NCBI RefSeq assembly: GCF_032191835.1
Contig: NC_083229.1
Span: 76,632,001 to 76,696,000 of the forward strand
Direction: 5' to 3'
DNA length: 64,000 nt
From: Heteronotia binoei
Lineage: Eukaryota
Shown here: one piece after another, positions 47,136-62,397 of the stretch
Layout: each line of letters begins with the position of its first letter
Position numbering within the stretch: the stretch's first letter is position 1
Translations under genes and position numbers: made by a program
The notes under the pieces: generated by a model
Told to the model about the DNA's origin: nothing
Seen by the model: only the letters and a program-made list of their open reading frames with translations
Databases searched by the model: none

Positions 47136-47610
47136 TTGTTTGTCTGTGCATGCCTCTGCCCTTCTGTCTGCCATTGGCAGAGTCTCTGACAGCAGGAGGG
47201 TGTGAGAGGATTGATGGCCTCTCCAGTGTGGGCTTTGCACCCCCTCTCCCGGTCACATACAACAGGCTGGCCAATCCTGTGGTCCTGCATGAGCCTGTGA
47301 CTCCCCCACCCCTACCTCAGCAGCGAGTCAATGGTGTGCGCATGGGCAGAATTACCATGGTGACAGGTTCTCTCTCGCTCATTGGGCCCGTGCTCCCCCT
47401 CCACTCGTAGCTTAACGTCTTCCCTTTGGGAGCTGACTGCGTCTGCCTACGCTAATTCTGCATTTGAGTGCAGTTACAGGGCAGTTCTCTGGATTGGACT
47501 GTCCATGGCCTTCTGACATTAATGCTGACTCTGTGAACTTAGGCAGATCATGAGAGGGAAGGCAGGAATGGTTGCATCAATGCTTGGTTCTTGTGGTTCT
47601 TTCTTACCTG

Positions 47611-47815
47611 CCAGGGAAATGTTGACCACCACTTTGGGGTCAAAATGGAAACAATTTCTCTCCAGGTCAGTTTGACCAGGGATTCTGGAGGTTTTTTGCC
47701 ATCTTCTAGGTATGGAACAAAGGTTACTGAGGAGGAGGGAAATATTTGTACATTTCCTGCATTGTGCAAGGGGCTGGATCTTAGAGGTCCTTTCCAACGT
47801 TATGATTCTATGATT
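47611..47815 (+). mobile_element. CR1 3' UTR remnant (long-UTR type)
   Basis: Ends ATTTCCTGCATTGTGCAAGGGGCTGGA..GAGGTCCTTTCCAAC.TTATGATTCTATGATT, like the terminus at 30120-30206. Confidence 0.75.
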
Positions 47816-50325: not shown

Positions 50326-50568
50326 AGAGCCAGTTTGGTGTAGTGGTTGACTCTTATCTGGGAGAACCAGGTTTGATTCCCCACTCCTCCACTTGCACCT
50401 GCTGGAATGGCCTTGGGTCAGCCATAGCTCTGGCAGAGGTTGTCCTTGAAAGGGCAGCTGCTGTAAGAGCCCTCTCAGCCCCACCCACCTCACAGGGGGT
50501 CTGTTGTGGGGGGAGGAGATTGTAAGCCACTCTGAGGGTGGGGTATAAATCTGCAATTCTTCTTCTTA
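50326..50568 (+). mobile_element. Squam3-like (MIR/Ther1-derived) SINE with small internal deletions
   Basis: AGCCAGTTTGGTGTAGTGGTT (A box), GGTTTGATTCCCC (B box), (TTC)n tail; matches 61479-61723. Confidence 0.85.
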
Positions 50569-56538: not shown

Positions 56539-56945
56539 TTGCCCCCCCAGTCGGAATGAAGACGCAGACACAAGTGTTGGGTTTTAAACCGGGCCGCTTT
56601 ATTAAACCATTAATTAACTGTAACTGGCAGGGGGGGGTGAAAACCTGAACCAGACAAGCCCTGGGGTCAACACCTGGACCCCGCCTTGTCCAAAGGGCGA
56701 GCCACCCTGCCCCCAGCACAAGCCCGCCGTATTCGGGTTGTAGCTGAGCGGCCAGGCCTCCAGCCATCACCATCTGGGCTGGCATCAATCCCCATGGAAA
56801 GATCCACCCAGGTGAGGCTCCCTGTGATCTGCATTCCCCGCACTGAGCCGTGTAGCCCATCTACGGTTCCTGCAGACCACCGCACCAACGGTGCTAGGCC
56901 ATAGGTGCTCCCCTGGAAAACCCTGTGGCCAAACCTCCTCCAGCC
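56539..56945 (-). repeat. Ngaro repeat B2 (copy B1 at 57298-57703)
   Basis: About 3 substitutions and 1 G-run indel between copies; AATAAA on minus at 56603-56598. Confidence 0.95.
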
Positions 56946-56984
56946 TGCGACCATAGCAAATACCACTAAAATCCTAACCTAGTA

Positions 56985-57095
56985 GGCAGTACAAGGTAGG
57001 CGAAAAAAACACCCCCACATGGGCCAATTGTGTGGAAGTGAAAAAAAATTCCTACCTGGCCCCTAATAAGGCGACCAGCATACGCCTGTACTGCC
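56985..57095 (-). ncRNA. Putative structured cis-RNA element, ENE-like U-rich internal loop
   Basis: GGCAGUACA/UGUACUGCC closing stem; CUGGUCGCC/GGGGCCAG hairpin; AGGUAGG/CCUACCU lower stem; U8 and U7 loop strands; CACUUCCACA/UGUGGGGGUG upper stem. Manual fold only. Confidence 0.6.
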
Positions 57096-57116
57096 AAAAG
57101 GGAAGGGTGGGCGGGC

Positions 57117-57299
57117 AGAGAGCCAAAAGGAACTGCGTGCTGAGGGGGCGGGGGCCAAGGCTTATATAGCCCCGACTCCACGCCCCAGCAAACACCCGTA
57201 TATCGGGTGATTCTGCATCTCCCTCCTTCCGGAGGGGGCAAAGACGGCCCCCAGCCTGAACGCCGGCAAGCCGGCTTGGCTGGGGAGGGGCCGGACCTT
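57117..57299 (-). repeat. Ngaro repeat A2 (copy A1 at 62120-62302), contains a TATA box
   Basis: 183-bp copies with about 4 differences; minus-strand GGGGCTATATAAGCC. Confidence 0.95.
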
Positions 57300-57799
57300 G
57301 CCCCCCCAGTCGGAATGAAGACGCAGACACAAGTGTTGGGTTTTAAACCGGGCCGCTTTATTAAACCATTAATTAACTGTAACTGGCAGGGGGGGTGAAA
57401 ACCTGAACCAGACAAGCCCTGGGGTCAACACCTGGACCCCGCCTTGTCCAAAGGGCGAGCCACCCTGCCCCCAGCACAAGCCCGCCGTATTCGGGTTGTA
57501 GCTGAGTGGCCAGGCCTCCAGCCATCACCATCTGGGCTGGCATCAATCCCCATGGAAAGATCCACCCAGGTGAGGCTCCCTGTGATCTGCATTCCCCGCA
57601 CTGAGCCGTGTAGCCCATCTACGGTTCCTGCAGACCACAGCACCAACGGTGCTAGGCCATAGGTGCTCCCCTGGAAAACCCTGTGGCCAAACCTCTTCCA
57701 GCCACCGCCAATGCCAAGCCTCTGCTTAGGCATTAGCGCCCCACCGGGTGGCCCAGAGCCAACCGAACCCCCCGCCGTAGCTAATCTAAACAGGCCCGG

Positions 57800-58330
57800 T
57801 TGCCCAACTCAGGGGGAAAAAAAAAAAAAAGAACACCATCTGGCCGATGCGGGTCAGCCTGTTCGACCCGTATGGTCGGATGCGGGAAAAGGATTCCTTA
57901 CATAGCTTACTGAATGGCGCTATTGACCTTGCGCCTGGCACGCTCAACACCACCGGCGAAATGGCATGCCTCCCCACCCTGCGCGGCAAGATTGCCGACT
58001 AGCCAAAATAACCCCAGGCCACCTCTGCTGAATTTCACGGAGGTAAGCCAACGCCTGCTGGGAGAAAGCTTTCCCACACAGCAACACCAAGTCGTTCCCT
58101 CCTAAGAACGACAAGACTGTGTGGAGGTGGTGCCTTCAGCTCCCTGAACAGCAGGGGTATGATCCCGGGCCAGCGCAGCCCCCGACGACCCAGCCAATCC
58201 ACGGCAGCCCCTGCACGGAGGCCGAGCTGGGTGCCCACTGGAGACCGTCTGGCGCAAAGGGGCAGCCCAGAAAACCATGCTGTGCCCACAGATGAGAATG
58301 CAACGTCTCTCACCACGAGCCCCAGCACCT
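57800..58330 (-). pseudogene. SGNH hydrolase-like ORF remnant of the Ngaro element
   Basis: ILICGHSMVFWA, QLGL...WLGRRGLRW, LGGNDL, PHP.I.....RPDGV across frameshifts. Confidence 0.75.
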
Positions 58331-59086: not shown

Positions 59087-60618
59087 CTATTGAGTGCCGT
59101 CGGGCGAATGGGGCTGGGCCCCCTTTCCCGGTGGCTGCTGCCCGCCACCGCTGCCCCTGGGGCCTTTGCTGCCTGATCTGGAAGTAGATCTGCTGCAGGC
59201 AGAAAGTGTGTGGGCCCCGCTGCAAAGCGGGCACTCATGTCGGAACTTACAAGGTTTCCTGGGGCACGCACCCTTAGATGCGAACTCCCAGCATAACAGC
59301 CGGGTCTGAACTGACTGGCCCGCGGTATCGCGGGCCCCCGAAGAAGACTGTTGTTGCTGCAACCTCTGCACTAGATGGCCGCTGTCAGACCTGTCTCCGG
59401 CATTTGGTTTTGCTGGGGACATCAGCTGTAGCCACAGCTTCTGGTTTATTTGGTCCCACGGCATCCCCGGGTTGACGGCGGCCCTCATACGGAAAGCCTC
59501 GTCGTATTGCAGCCACACTGCACCGACAAAGTCCGTATACGCCCGATAGATGATATCTATATACTGAAAGAGGGCAGACGCCCGAGTCGGCTGCGCTCTC
59601 GCAATGACCCCTGCGTAGATCAACATTCCGGGCAACCAATTTGCCCAGGACCTATCAATCTTTCTATGCTTCAGTTTCTCCTTCTCCTTGTCATCGAGCT
59701 CGTCTTTACTTTTCTTTTCGAGCTCTCTGAAAAGGAGACCGAACACATCCACATACTCCCCGCGGAGAATTTTCTCCCGCGTAGCGGCTGTCAAATGATC
59801 CCCCAAAGGCAAGGAGGTATCGCCATAGGGGAGGATGTGGAAAGGGATGCTAGCATAAGGGTTGGGGGGGTAGAACCACCCACTACCCTGGGCCGCCGGC
59901 CACGCCCCCTGCAAATGAGCCAACTGCTGACCTCCCAAAGGCAAAATGCCTGGAGTAGGCGGGGCAGAAGGGGCCGCGGGCGGTGCCGCAGCGCCCGCCA
60001 ACTGTCCACTTGGAGAAAAAACCTGACTGGGGAGCGGGCTAGCCCCATGAAAGCCCCAAGCCCACGGCTGTACAGGACTCGACTGCTCCATGACTCCCAG
60101 CTGCCCTACACCCCATGCCGCCCCGCCAGGCGCCGCTGGGGGGGGGGAGGAAGTTGAATGGGACCCCACGGCCACCCTTGAACTGGCAGAAGAGGGGGCT
60201 TACCACCATCACCCGAAAAGACACCAGGGCCTCCAGGAGTCTGCTGCACGCCGCTACCAGATGCACCAGCGCCGCCTGCCGCACCAGATGGACCCTCCTC
60301 CGGATCCTCCTCCTGCTCCGGTTCACGTGGTGATTCAGGCTCGGGTGGCCCGCCCTGTAAGGCAGATAAACGTGCGAGCACTTCTGCCTCAAAAGTCAGC
60401 CGTGCCGACCGGCCGGAGGCACGGCGACGCCCCTCCCAAATGGGAGCACCCCTTGCAACCCTGTCTTGTTCCAAGGCGTCCAGTTGACTCATAATGGCGA
60501 GCCTCACCCTCTCACCTTGCCCAGGTTCCTGGACTGGAGTACCCTGCTGACCACGCCCCCGGGGTGGACGGGCGGGCTGTTTACCCTTTGACTTGCCTTG
60601 CCCTTTTTTAGGAGCCAT
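59087..60618 (-). CDS. Ngaro gag-like ORF1 with one frameshift near the G-run at 60138-60147
   Basis: MAPKK start at 60618; PLGDHL...EKILRGEYVD, WLQYDEAFR; CWEFASKGACPRKPCKFRHECPLCSGAHTLSAC. Confidence 0.82.
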
Positions 60619-61347
60619 TATGTGTGCTTCAAACAGCACAGGTCACAAAATTAGCAGTGCTTGCTGCACCAGACACTCAAGGTTCCCTCTGAACTTCCAC
60701 ACCACCAGAGGTGAATGTTAGCAAAAAAAAGGGGGGGTGCCCAATGGAGCATCCCACAATACCCTCAGTCCCAGGCTGAGAGCCTAGCCCAGCCCAAAGT
60801 GGTGTGTGTGTGTGTGGGGGGGCGCCCTAGGAACCACAAACTCCCTGCACCCAAGGGTGTAGAGGAAGGGAGAAGGTGGATGCCTGATGACACCAACCTC
60901 TGTGCCTAGCCACCACCAAGTACCAAAAAGAAGGGAAGGGTCCTGTGGCAGCTCAGGCTGCCTGACCTATTTTATAGTGGAGAATGGCAGAAGGGCTGCA
61001 CTGCAGTAATGCCCCCACCAAACCCTCACCACCAGAAGGCTGAAGGCCTGGCACAGCCCAACGTGGGGTGGGGGTAGGGGCTTAGAAACCACTAACTCCC
61101 TATACCCAGGAGGTGCAGGAAAGGGGAGGGGTGAATAGCTGACTGAAGACACCAGCCTGTACTAAGCCACCACCAGCGCCCAGGAAGAAGGGGGGGGGAG
61201 GCCCTGAGGTAAGGCAGGCTGCCTGTCCCGAGAGGGAGTGGTGGTGGGGGGGGGGGGACAGGAAGCTTATCCGACTCCCAAAATATCCCTCCAAGGCCAG
61301 CCGAACACCAGGGCGCAACACCCCTATCCAGGTGCACTAAATTTTGA

Positions 61348-61478
61348 NNNNNNNNNNNNNNNNNNNNNNNNNNNNNNNNNNNNNNNNNNNNNNNNNNNNN
61401 NNNNNNNNNNNNNNNNNNNNNNNNNNNNNNNNNNNNNNNNNNNNNNNNNNNNNNNNNNNNNNNNNNNNNNNNNNNNNN
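61348..61478. other. Assembly gap (131 N)
   Basis: Run of N. Confidence 1.
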
Positions 61479-61750
61479 CGCCCTCCACTCCGAAGAGTCT
61501 CAGAGCGGCTCACAATCTCCTTTACCTTCCTCCCCCACAACAGACACCCTGTGAGGTGGGTGGGGCTGAGAGGGCTCTCACAGCAGCTGCCCTTTCAAGG
61601 ACAACCTCTGCCAGAGCTATGGCTGACCCAAGGCCATGCCAGCAGGTGCAAGTGGAGGAGTGGGGAATCAAACCTGGTTCTCCCAGATAAGAGTCCGCAC
61701 ACTTAACCACTACACCAAACTGGGCCACTACACTTAACCACTACACCAAA
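61479..61750 (-). mobile_element. Squam3-like SINE inside the Ngaro element, with a duplicated A-box end (61731-61750)
   Basis: Reverse complement of 50326-50568; the 3' end runs into the gap. Confidence 0.88.
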
Positions 61751-62397
61751 GGGGCCTAGGAGTTAACAACGAGGCAACAGCCTCACTGCCGGCCGCCTGC
61801 GAACCGCCCGGTACGCGGGACCGCCGCGCTCTCCCCTCGACTTGAGGGGAAAAAAGGGAAGCTGCTGCAGTCAAGCGAGCCCCACTACCAGAGGCCCAGG
61901 TCTCCTCAGCCGCACGCGCGCTCCTGCCCCGGCCTCCCGGCCACCAACCGCCCCAGGCAAACCAGACTTCCCAACGCTGCTCTGCCTCGCCGGCGCAACA
62001 AAAAAGCTGCCGCTCGCGCCAAACGCCGCCGCATGCGATCAGGAGCCGCACGCGCCCACACAGTCCCCCAGCGTCAATCAGGCCTCGTCTCGGACCCGAT
62101 CAGCACGCGGCTCTCGTCTAGAGAGCCAAAAGGAACTGCATGCTGAGGGGGCGGGGGCCGGGGCTTATATAGCCCCGACTCCACGCCCCAGCAAACACCC
62201 GTATATCGGGTGATTCTGCATCTCCCTCCTTCCGGAGGGGGCAAAGACGGCCCCCAGCCTGAACGCCAGCAAGCCGGCTTGGCTGGGGAGGGGCCGGACC
62301 TTTTCAGCTTTTATTTTTTTAAAAAATAAGTCTTTAGCTTTTCCCCTTGCATAGGTGTAAGGGACAAAGCATATCTTTGCAAGGGAAAGAGCTAGAG

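Follow-up and report, generated by a model that had tools for sequence, protein, structure and literature searches.

The locus described here raises the question of whether a retrotransposon of an amniote carries, in the 3' part of its RNA, a structure able to clamp the RNA's own poly(A) tail. It is a 111-nt segment near the 3' end of a Ngaro element, a tyrosine-recombinase retroelement, in the genome of the gecko Heteronotia binoei (contig NC_083229.1, positions 76,632,001 to 76,696,000, a stretch of 64,000 nt that is called the window below and in which all positions are counted). An initial annotation, made from the letters of the window, had read this segment as a candidate element for nuclear expression (ENE). 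ENEs are the best-understood natural RNA triple helices, and their known animal cases comprise MALAT1/MEN-beta, viruses and one transposable element (TE) of stickleback. According to reviews and the Evade paper, from which we have drawn the defining features, an ENE is a U-rich internal loop between two helices, with adjacent G-C pairs, located in the 3' part of a polyadenylated RNA, and it binds poly(A) as U-A-U triples, by which the tail is protected (PMC7583470, PMC13541005, PMC12501189). In this paper, we have compared the motif with its counterparts in related elements. We find that it is an RNA structure of the sense strand, conserved in the 3' untranslated part of Ngaro RNA, and a poly(A) clamp of the ENE type is, tentatively, our best reading of what it would do.

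Read on the minus strand (57095-56985), the segment folds with a minimum free energy (MFE) of -47.7 kcal/mol and a z-score of -4.86, and none of 200 dinucleotide shuffles folds equally well, whereas the plus strand of 56985-57095 folds worse, at -38.9 kcal/mol. The structure is a three-way junction formed by a closing stem (P1), a side hairpin (P2) and an arm in which a U-rich internal loop separates a lower stem (P3) from an upper stem (P4) with its apical loop (Table 1); both the sequence and the fold that the initial annotation had given are reproduced by the minus-strand reading and by the MFE fold of the RNA. The only ambiguous point is the register at the junction, where the MFE fold pairs G10-G11 with C101-U102 and the consensus pairs A39-G40 with them. 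The same architecture is obtained when each of eight distinct sequences is folded alone (z -3.5 to -5.9). These are the window, four subfamilies of Eublepharis (L001, L002, L011, and L005, L006 and L007, which share one sequence), two Heteronotia copies (L010) and one copy of Rhineura floridana (L009), and they constitute the sample for the comparisons below. Furthermore, a generic descriptor, which requires five or more U's on both strands, an upper stem (6 bp or longer) that borders directly on both tracts and, no more than 2 nt away, a lower stem of 5 bp or longer, has seven matches in ~600 kb of squamate sequence (both strands counted), which represent five distinct sequences and are all this motif, against a mean of 0.05 matches in 20 dinucleotide shuffles. 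The architecture is thus well beyond chance.

Between the window and the Eublepharis elements, the spacer motif is 77-81% identical over 115-136 nt and is the best-conserved segment by percent identity, while most of the other non-coding sequence is unalignable and the DNA of the first open reading frame (ORF1) is 68% identical. In a model-guided alignment of the eight sequences, standard pairs occupy 93.1% of the pair cells, compared with 78.8% in shuffles, and double-sided changes are found in 22 of the 37 pairs, compared with 10.1 in shuffles, none of 500 of which reaches the observed number; when the partners are slid by 1-3 columns, 7-11 pairs show such changes. A plain MAFFT alignment followed by de novo RNAalifold gives compensatory changes in 16 of 28 pairs and recovers the closing stem, the side hairpin and the lower stem; since these stems are recovered without the model, the covariation signal is not made by fitting to it. 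Each helix contributes in its own way. Double-sided changes affect five of the nine pairs of P1, including a series from A-U through G-U to G-C, and four of the seven pairs of P2. In P3, the top two G-C pairs are invariant (8/8), and Rhineura shows one compensatory change from G-C to A-U. In P4, ten of the 11 model pairs have changed on both sides, so that the sequence differs from subfamily to subfamily (the variants of its 5' strand include CACUUCCACA, CACCCCUCAC, CGCCCUUCGCC, CCUCCGG and CUCC-UCCCC) and the pairing is kept. Throughout the helices there are 33 G-U cells and only 3 A-C cells, and the sense strand is 94% paired, whereas the antisense strand would be 82% paired. The apical AUUGGC stays constant while the stem below it changes, with UUGGC invariant in all seven gecko sequences and UUUAAC in its place in Rhineura; on the plus strand it reads CCAAT. 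A kissing loop was considered for it and rejected, as the elements contain no consistently placed GCCAAU complement to the apical loop.

The other conspicuous part is the internal loop itself. On its 5' strand, AAUUUUU is 100% conserved in seven of seven sequences, and the most conserved unpaired columns of the whole motif (86-100%) are those of the two U tracts, of the invariant AA and of the G that precedes the lower stem; the C/U position just before this invariant G is 57% conserved, and the other loops 43-71%. The two loop strands always change length together across the eight sequences, their 5' and 3' lengths being 8 and 7 nt in six sequences, 10 and 9 nt in the window and 7 and 6 nt in one Heteronotia copy, as would be required if a further strand were sandwiched between both tracts. 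In the six other gecko sequences each tract has five or six U's. The same behaviour is seen in contigs assembled from RNA libraries, which are mostly 2 nt shorter than the window at 57041-57050; in one run (X1), the same two contigs are 2 nt shorter in both tracts. Seven of the eight sequences have a C-G pair directly next to both tracts on the upper side. Two checks proposed with the initial annotation, covariation of the stems across Ngaro copies and species and conservation of the U tracts among copies, therefore both came out in its favour: the double-sided pairs extend over geckos and an amphisbaenian, and the tracts are among the best-conserved unpaired columns.

Table 1. Positions of the motif, its parts and the surrounding features of the Ngaro element in the window
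Feature	Positions	Strand	Evidence or remark
Whole three-way-junction, ENE-like motif, 111 nt	56985-57095	-	MFE fold, covariance model, covariation
Closing stem P1, 9 bp, 5' strand GGCAGUACA	57087-57095	-	Pairs with 56993-56985
Side hairpin P2	57058-57078	-	Fold; register at junction ambiguous
Lower stem P3, 7 bp, 5' strand AGGUAGG	57051-57057	-	Nearly invariant
Internal loop, 5' strand, 10 nt: AA then U8	57041-57050	-	AA invariant; U5-U6 in relatives
Upper stem P4, 10 bp, 5' strand CACUUCCACA	57031-57040	-	C-G pair abuts 5' U tract
Apical loop, 11 nt, with AUUGGC	57020-57030	-	Conservation in relatives
Upper stem P4, 3' strand UGUGGGGGUG	57010-57019	-	Two G-U pairs
Internal loop, 3' strand, 9 nt: U7 then CG	57001-57009	-	U5CG or U5-6G in relatives
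Lower stem P3, 3' strand CCUACCU	56994-57000	-	Fold and covariation
Closing stem P1, 3' strand UGUACUGCC	56985-56993	-	Fold and covariation
A2/B2 spacer, 186 nt, unique, not present after A1	56931-57116	-	Repeat comparison
Repeat A1	62120-62302	-	98% identity to A2; TATA box 62171-62164
Gag-like ORF1, CCCH zinc finger, two overlapping frameshifted ORFs	59087-60639	-	Homologs in Eublepharis, Pogona, Heteronotia
Repeat B1	57298-57688	-	99-100% identity to B2; AAUAAA 57362-57357
Poly(A) signal AAUAAA in B1, identical to that in B2, upstream of A2 and motif	57357-57362	-	Also with CA and GU-rich element
Repeat A2	57117-57299	-	Copy of A1; TATA box 57168-57161
Repeat B2	56539-56930	-	Copy of B1, 3' end of element; AAUAAA 56603-56598
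Poly(A) signal AAUAAA in B2, then CA and GU-rich element (UUGUGUCUGCGUCUU)	56598-56603	-	382 nt past motif

The element that carries the motif spans 62302 to 56539 on the minus strand of the window and has split direct repeats in the layout A1...B1-A2-spacer-B2. Past A1 the sequence diverges immediately from that past A2, so the 186-nt spacer with the motif is unique to the 3' end; the terminal GGGGGCAA of B2 is kept in related elements. The window copy has retained the gag-like ORF and a remnant of the last (hydrolase) ORF and lacks ~1.8 kb that in relatives encodes the reverse transcriptase (RT) and most of the tyrosine recombinase; it is an internally deleted, non-autonomous derivative. Relatives of the gag-like ORF were found in Eublepharis macularius, Pogona vitticeps and Heteronotia binoei. 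One of the related sequences, a Logan contig (L003), carries in order a gag-like ORF, an RT, a 224-aa ORF and a GDSL hydrolase, and an Eublepharis element (L007) is full length, with A1, a 516-aa gag-like ORF, RT, tyrosine recombinase, GDSL hydrolase, B1, A2, spacer and B2. The domains of L007 score 42.8 bits for RVT_1, 31.1 for Phage_integrase (cutoff 27.1) and 35 for Lipase_GDSL_2 (cutoff 32.9), and its organization matches the four-ORF Ngaro layout with split direct repeats that has been described previously (PMC9210276, PMC4157794). Ngaro elements encode a gag-like protein, RT/RNase H and a tyrosine recombinase, lack a methyltransferase and often have an additional ORF for an SGNH/GDSL hydrolase. 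The spacer of L007 that holds the motif, between A2 and B2, is 174 nt long; the members of each repeat pair are 100% identical, and other chromosomes carry near-identical copies. Intact as it is, with identical repeats and such copies, L007 indicates that the motif belongs to an apparently active family.

Four sequences were used to build a covariance model, which gives the window motif a score of 116 bits; its matches share one orientation relative to the element in all the relatives found. The copy of the amphisbaenian Rhineura floridana scores 40 bits (E ~2e-6) and has, 425 nt downstream, both the AAUAAA of the family and its terminal GGGGGCAA. The two-part core of the motif was also sought in metagenome and viral contigs, where no match was found.

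Downstream of the motif, at a distance of 382-432 nt, an AAUAAA with a GU-rich element is conserved in six of the seven elements checked. In the window, the 382 nt from the motif to this signal contain no A-run of six or more. The descriptions in the initial annotation of a squamate Ngaro retroelement, and of an AAUAAA ~390 nt downstream with no encoded A tract in between, are thus confirmed, the former by the split direct repeats together with the RT, tyrosine recombinase and GDSL hydrolase of the relatives. The sense strand of the intact L007 (17% A) likewise contains neither an A-run of six or more nor an A-rich 9-mer, which leaves the poly(A) tail as the sole A-rich partner in cis; an encoded A tract of the MALAT1 type was therefore rejected. 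On the other side of the motif, B1 has its own AAUAAA upstream, so a full-length, replication-competent RNA must read through it. As for transcripts, a search of sequencing runs with the 186-nt spacer as query matched no runs, and a 9.9-kb query matched only four RNA-library runs (Logan contigs). In these four libraries, contigs at 85-99% identity cover the 3' repeats and the motif; one contig of 263 nt spans 56916-57184, and another spans 57143-57362, crossing the predicted B1 cleavage site into A2. These contigs are compatible with read-through transcripts that contain the motif.

Taken together, the U-rich loop between helices agrees with the definition of an ENE, and the G-C pairs and the 3' position appear to agree with it in part, and it is for this reason that we place an ENE-like poly(A) clamp first. 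Tracts of about five or more U's lie on both strands of the internal loop (AA-U8 and U7-CG in the window), and helices flank it on both sides, of which the lower hardly varies and the upper has been maintained through compensatory changes. In the mechanism that we propose, the RNA would be cleaved and polyadenylated ~400 nt downstream, and the tail would then fold back into the internal loop, where the 3' U tract would form Watson-Crick pairs with it and the 5' U tract Hoogsteen pairs, so that five or more U-A-U triples would arise. The triplex would be capped on one side by the C-G pair that closes the upper stem, and on the other side by the invariant AA/(Y)G step together with the two invariant G-C pairs of the lower stem. 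A tail clamped in this way would be hidden from deadenylases, and the intronless RNA of the element would be stabilised. Furthermore, the clamp would act specifically on transcripts that extend past the B1 signal and carry the full B1-A2-spacer-B2 information for replication. We infer from the architecture and its position that the tail would be bound, that a triplex would form and that the RNA would be stabilised, with a preference for read-through RNA; the structure is solid, and the ENE function is plausible as a model.

Several observations weigh against this reading. The distance between motif and tail, ~400-450 nt, differs from that of a canonical ENE; the ENE that KSHV (Kaposi's sarcoma-associated herpesvirus) carries in its PAN RNA lies ~120 nt from its poly(A) site, compared with ~400 nt for the Ngaro motif. 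On the lower side of the loop, the invariant AA opposite (C/U)G separates the two invariant G-C pairs from the U tracts. The Rhineura copy, a single sequence, has U6 opposite UGGUUUG and hence a broken 3' tract. An ENE needs neither the invariant apical AUUGGC nor the conserved side hairpin, which point to another or an additional ligand. Since the B1 signal lies upstream, many transcripts may end before the motif, and the RNA-library contigs give neither strand, ends, level nor polyadenylation and could derive from DNA carry-over. In addition, a cmscan of Rfam 15 (4227 models, E<=10), made with 3 kb and with the motif alone, returned no ENE or structured family and one spurious match to an unstructured lncRNA; this speaks against homology with the described families, not against analogy.

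The motif resembles an ENE on paper, yet it lies outside every described ENE family, as a comparison with the known systems makes clear. In the KSHV PAN ENE, as in the Ngaro motif, two helices of a stem-loop flank an internal loop, both strands of which carry U-rich tracts. The RNA that holds it is intronless and polyadenylated, as is also predicted for Ngaro RNA, and has its poly(A) site further downstream. The crystal structure of the PAN ENE contains five U-A-U triples (PMC7583470), for which the Ngaro motif also has at least five opposed U's. The two share no sequence or model similarity, to judge from the lack of an Rfam match. The Ngaro motif differs in its three-way junction with a side hairpin, its AA/(Y)G step and its conserved apical loop, and its host is a cellular retroelement, with a function predicted by analogy, whereas PAN is a viral lncRNA. 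The dENE of rice TWIFB1 and the ENE of Arabidopsis Evade/Copia93 are closer in setting, being U-rich internal loops in the 3' part of a TE RNA, and the role proposed for them is the same, i.e. protecting the tail from deadenylation and so raising mobility. The Evade ENE lies in a spacer, itself unusual, that separates the terminal repeat from the last ORF, a precedent for the position of the Ngaro spacer, and the G-C pairs next to its U tracts are essential (PMC12501189). Most plant TE ENEs possess two domains with U loops, an adenosine triad that is conserved and a pocket for the 3' end (PMC13541005), while the Ngaro motif has a single U loop; moreover, the plant and fungal hosts are LTR elements and DNA transposons, whereas the Ngaro host is a tyrosine-recombinase retroelement of an amniote. 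The sole vertebrate TE ENE known is that of stickleback (PMC7583470). MALAT1 and the MEN-beta ENE+A are, like the motif, parts of vertebrate RNAs with U-rich loop strands that would clamp an A-rich 3' end. MALAT1, on the other hand, has a genomically encoded A-rich tract, processing by RNase P and U tracts interrupted by C/G, whereas the Ngaro elements have no encoded A tract and possess a canonical AAUAAA. Finally, the 3' stem-loops of stringent-type long interspersed nuclear elements (LINEs) are also conserved in the 3' untranslated region (UTR) and retained in non-autonomous derivatives; they are simple hairpins without opposed U tracts, the loop of which is read by the RT, whereas the Ngaro motif is defined by a symmetric U-rich loop.

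It is possible, though we hold it with some doubt, that the motif is the first ENE-type triple-helix element in an amniote transposon and in any DIRS/Ngaro element, selectively stabilising the read-through genomic RNA over the shorter mRNA. If so, its origin would be separate from that of the ENEs known in viruses, lncRNAs and plant/fungal TEs, and a three-way junction would serve as its frame. A literature search, the scope of which did not include the primary survey of ENEs in TEs, found no paper that connects Ngaro/DIRS elements with triple helices or an ENE, nor any on a conserved hairpin in their 3' region. The survey, by Tycowski, Shu and Steitz, reportedly found ENEs mainly in non-metazoan TEs plus a fish.

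The alternative that survives best, although we regard it as rather unlikely, is a cis-acting replication or packaging signal. According to this explanation, the three-way junction is read by the RT of the element or by its CCCH-zinc-finger Gag-like protein, which would select the read-through genomic RNA, or position the initiation of first-strand cDNA or template switching beside the B1-A2 bridge, and the U tracts would be part of a protein-binding surface or a flexible hinge. The motif lies directly 3' of the B1-A2 junction that templates the restoration of the element ends, and it is present in read-through RNAs only; the apical AUUGGC, which is invariant, and the lower stem, which hardly varies, point to recognition of specific sequence over and above the needs of an ENE; and the motif is kept in the deleted, non-autonomous window copy, as expected for mobilisation in trans. 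Recognition of a 3' stem-loop by the RT is established for stringent-type LINEs (mentioned in PMC5135761), and the replication and priming of tyrosine-recombinase retroelements are poorly known (PMC7192593). Such a signal, however, predicts neither the opposed U tracts, nor their joint length changes, nor the lack of any other A-rich partner, and the apical loop has no conserved complement. It is also compatible with a poly(A) clamp, so the two need not exclude each other.

An improbable explanation is that the motif is a platform for host RNA-binding proteins and involves no triple helix, the U tracts being displayed on a rigid scaffold from which they recruit factors for export, stability or translation. 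Many U-tract-binding proteins exist, and the location in the 3' UTR suits them, as do the U tracts, which are conserved and single-stranded in every predicted fold; protein sites, however, rarely need antiparallel tracts of equal length between helices or coordinated changes in their length. The architecture also fits the ENE descriptor that has already been successful at finding functional elements (PMC7583470).

We consider it very improbable that conservation acts at the level of DNA, with the motif serving as a recombination site of the tyrosine recombinase or as a promoter element, with ATTGG as a CCAAT box in inverse orientation and the inverted repeats as possible binding arms. CCAAT on the plus strand is conserved in seven of the eight sequences, the inverted repeats are conserved too, and a TATA box lies 73 nt upstream of the motif in the window. 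The position of this TATA box relative to the motif is not conserved, however, the arms are separated by 50-90 bp, which is not the case in recombinase core sites, and the integration junction is the B|A boundary, outside the spacer. More directly, the compensatory changes run through G-U intermediates (33 G-U against 3 A-C cells), which fits a single-stranded sense molecule and not duplex DNA. A chance hairpin conserved only through recent common descent of the copies, for which one might cite that several of the sequences come from one genome and that the family is young in places (100% identical repeats), is barely credible, as the flanking non-coding sequence hardly aligns between subfamilies that share a motif 77-81% identical, the double-sided changes exceed all shuffles and all slid controls, the descriptor would be expected 0.05 times per 600 kb, and the motif occurs both in Gekkota and in an amphisbaenian.

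If the poly(A) clamp is the correct reading, the ENE mechanism would extend to amniote mobile DNA and to tyrosine-recombinase retroelements, the RNA biology of which is almost unknown. It would represent an independent and differently framed solution, with a single U loop set in a three-way junction with an AA/YG step, and it would give a retroelement a way to favour its replication template over the shorter mRNA. With its 111 nt the motif would also be a compact candidate for structural work and for RNA-stabilising cassettes. Even without poly(A) binding, the most conserved non-coding segment of these elements provides a handle on how Ngaro RNA is selected, stabilised or copied.

A few further observations concern the window and the related sequences. 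A second match of the covariance model, at 47606-47711 on the plus strand of the window (26.6 bits, E 0.003), is like the motif in its side hairpin and includes a 3' U6 tract; Ngaro context, a poly(A) signal and the architecture are all missing, and the match, which was not counted, may be an ancient relic or due to chance. In a Gekko japonicus sequence (L004), positions 1148-1768, directly 3' of the hydrolase ORF of Ngaro, are taken up by an insertion of ~620 bp, which is dense in T7/A7 tracts and has inverted termini (TAGAGATGT...ACATCTCTA); an assembly gap comes next. Because the insertion and the gap interrupt it, the 3' region of this sequence is uninformative, and its cluster of T/A tracts was rejected as a Ngaro feature, since the tracts belong to the insertion. 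In public assemblies, Ngaro ORFs are annotated as host genes, as seen in Eublepharis (L005, L006, L007, L011) and Heteronotia (L010), under names such as 'uncharacterized protein LOC...' or, for the GDSL ORF, '1-alkyl-2-acetylglycerophosphocholine esterase'-like, and a 'semaphorin-6A-like' gene model includes a piece of a Ngaro gag.

Within the Ngaro element of the window, an assembly gap at 61348-61478 adjoins an unrelated high-copy repeat at 61375-61768, a second copy of which (89% identity) lies at 50330-50536. At this repeat, the summed depth of RNA-library contigs exceeds that of the remaining element by a factor of 10^4-10^5; a SINE-like (short interspersed element-like) insertion, without relation to the motif, is the probable explanation. 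A T14 on the minus strand (57817-57830), which is U14 in the sense of the element, lies near the end of the hydrolase-ORF remnant, just 5' of B1, and is flagged by contig mapping as an apparent place at which reads are cut. Finally, the TATA box that A2 shares with A1 (57168-57161 in A2), if active, would give rise to an RNA of ~560 nt starting ~45 nt before the motif and ending at the B2 poly(A) site (to 56575), which, if made, would be a small non-coding RNA consisting almost wholly of the spacer motif and B2.

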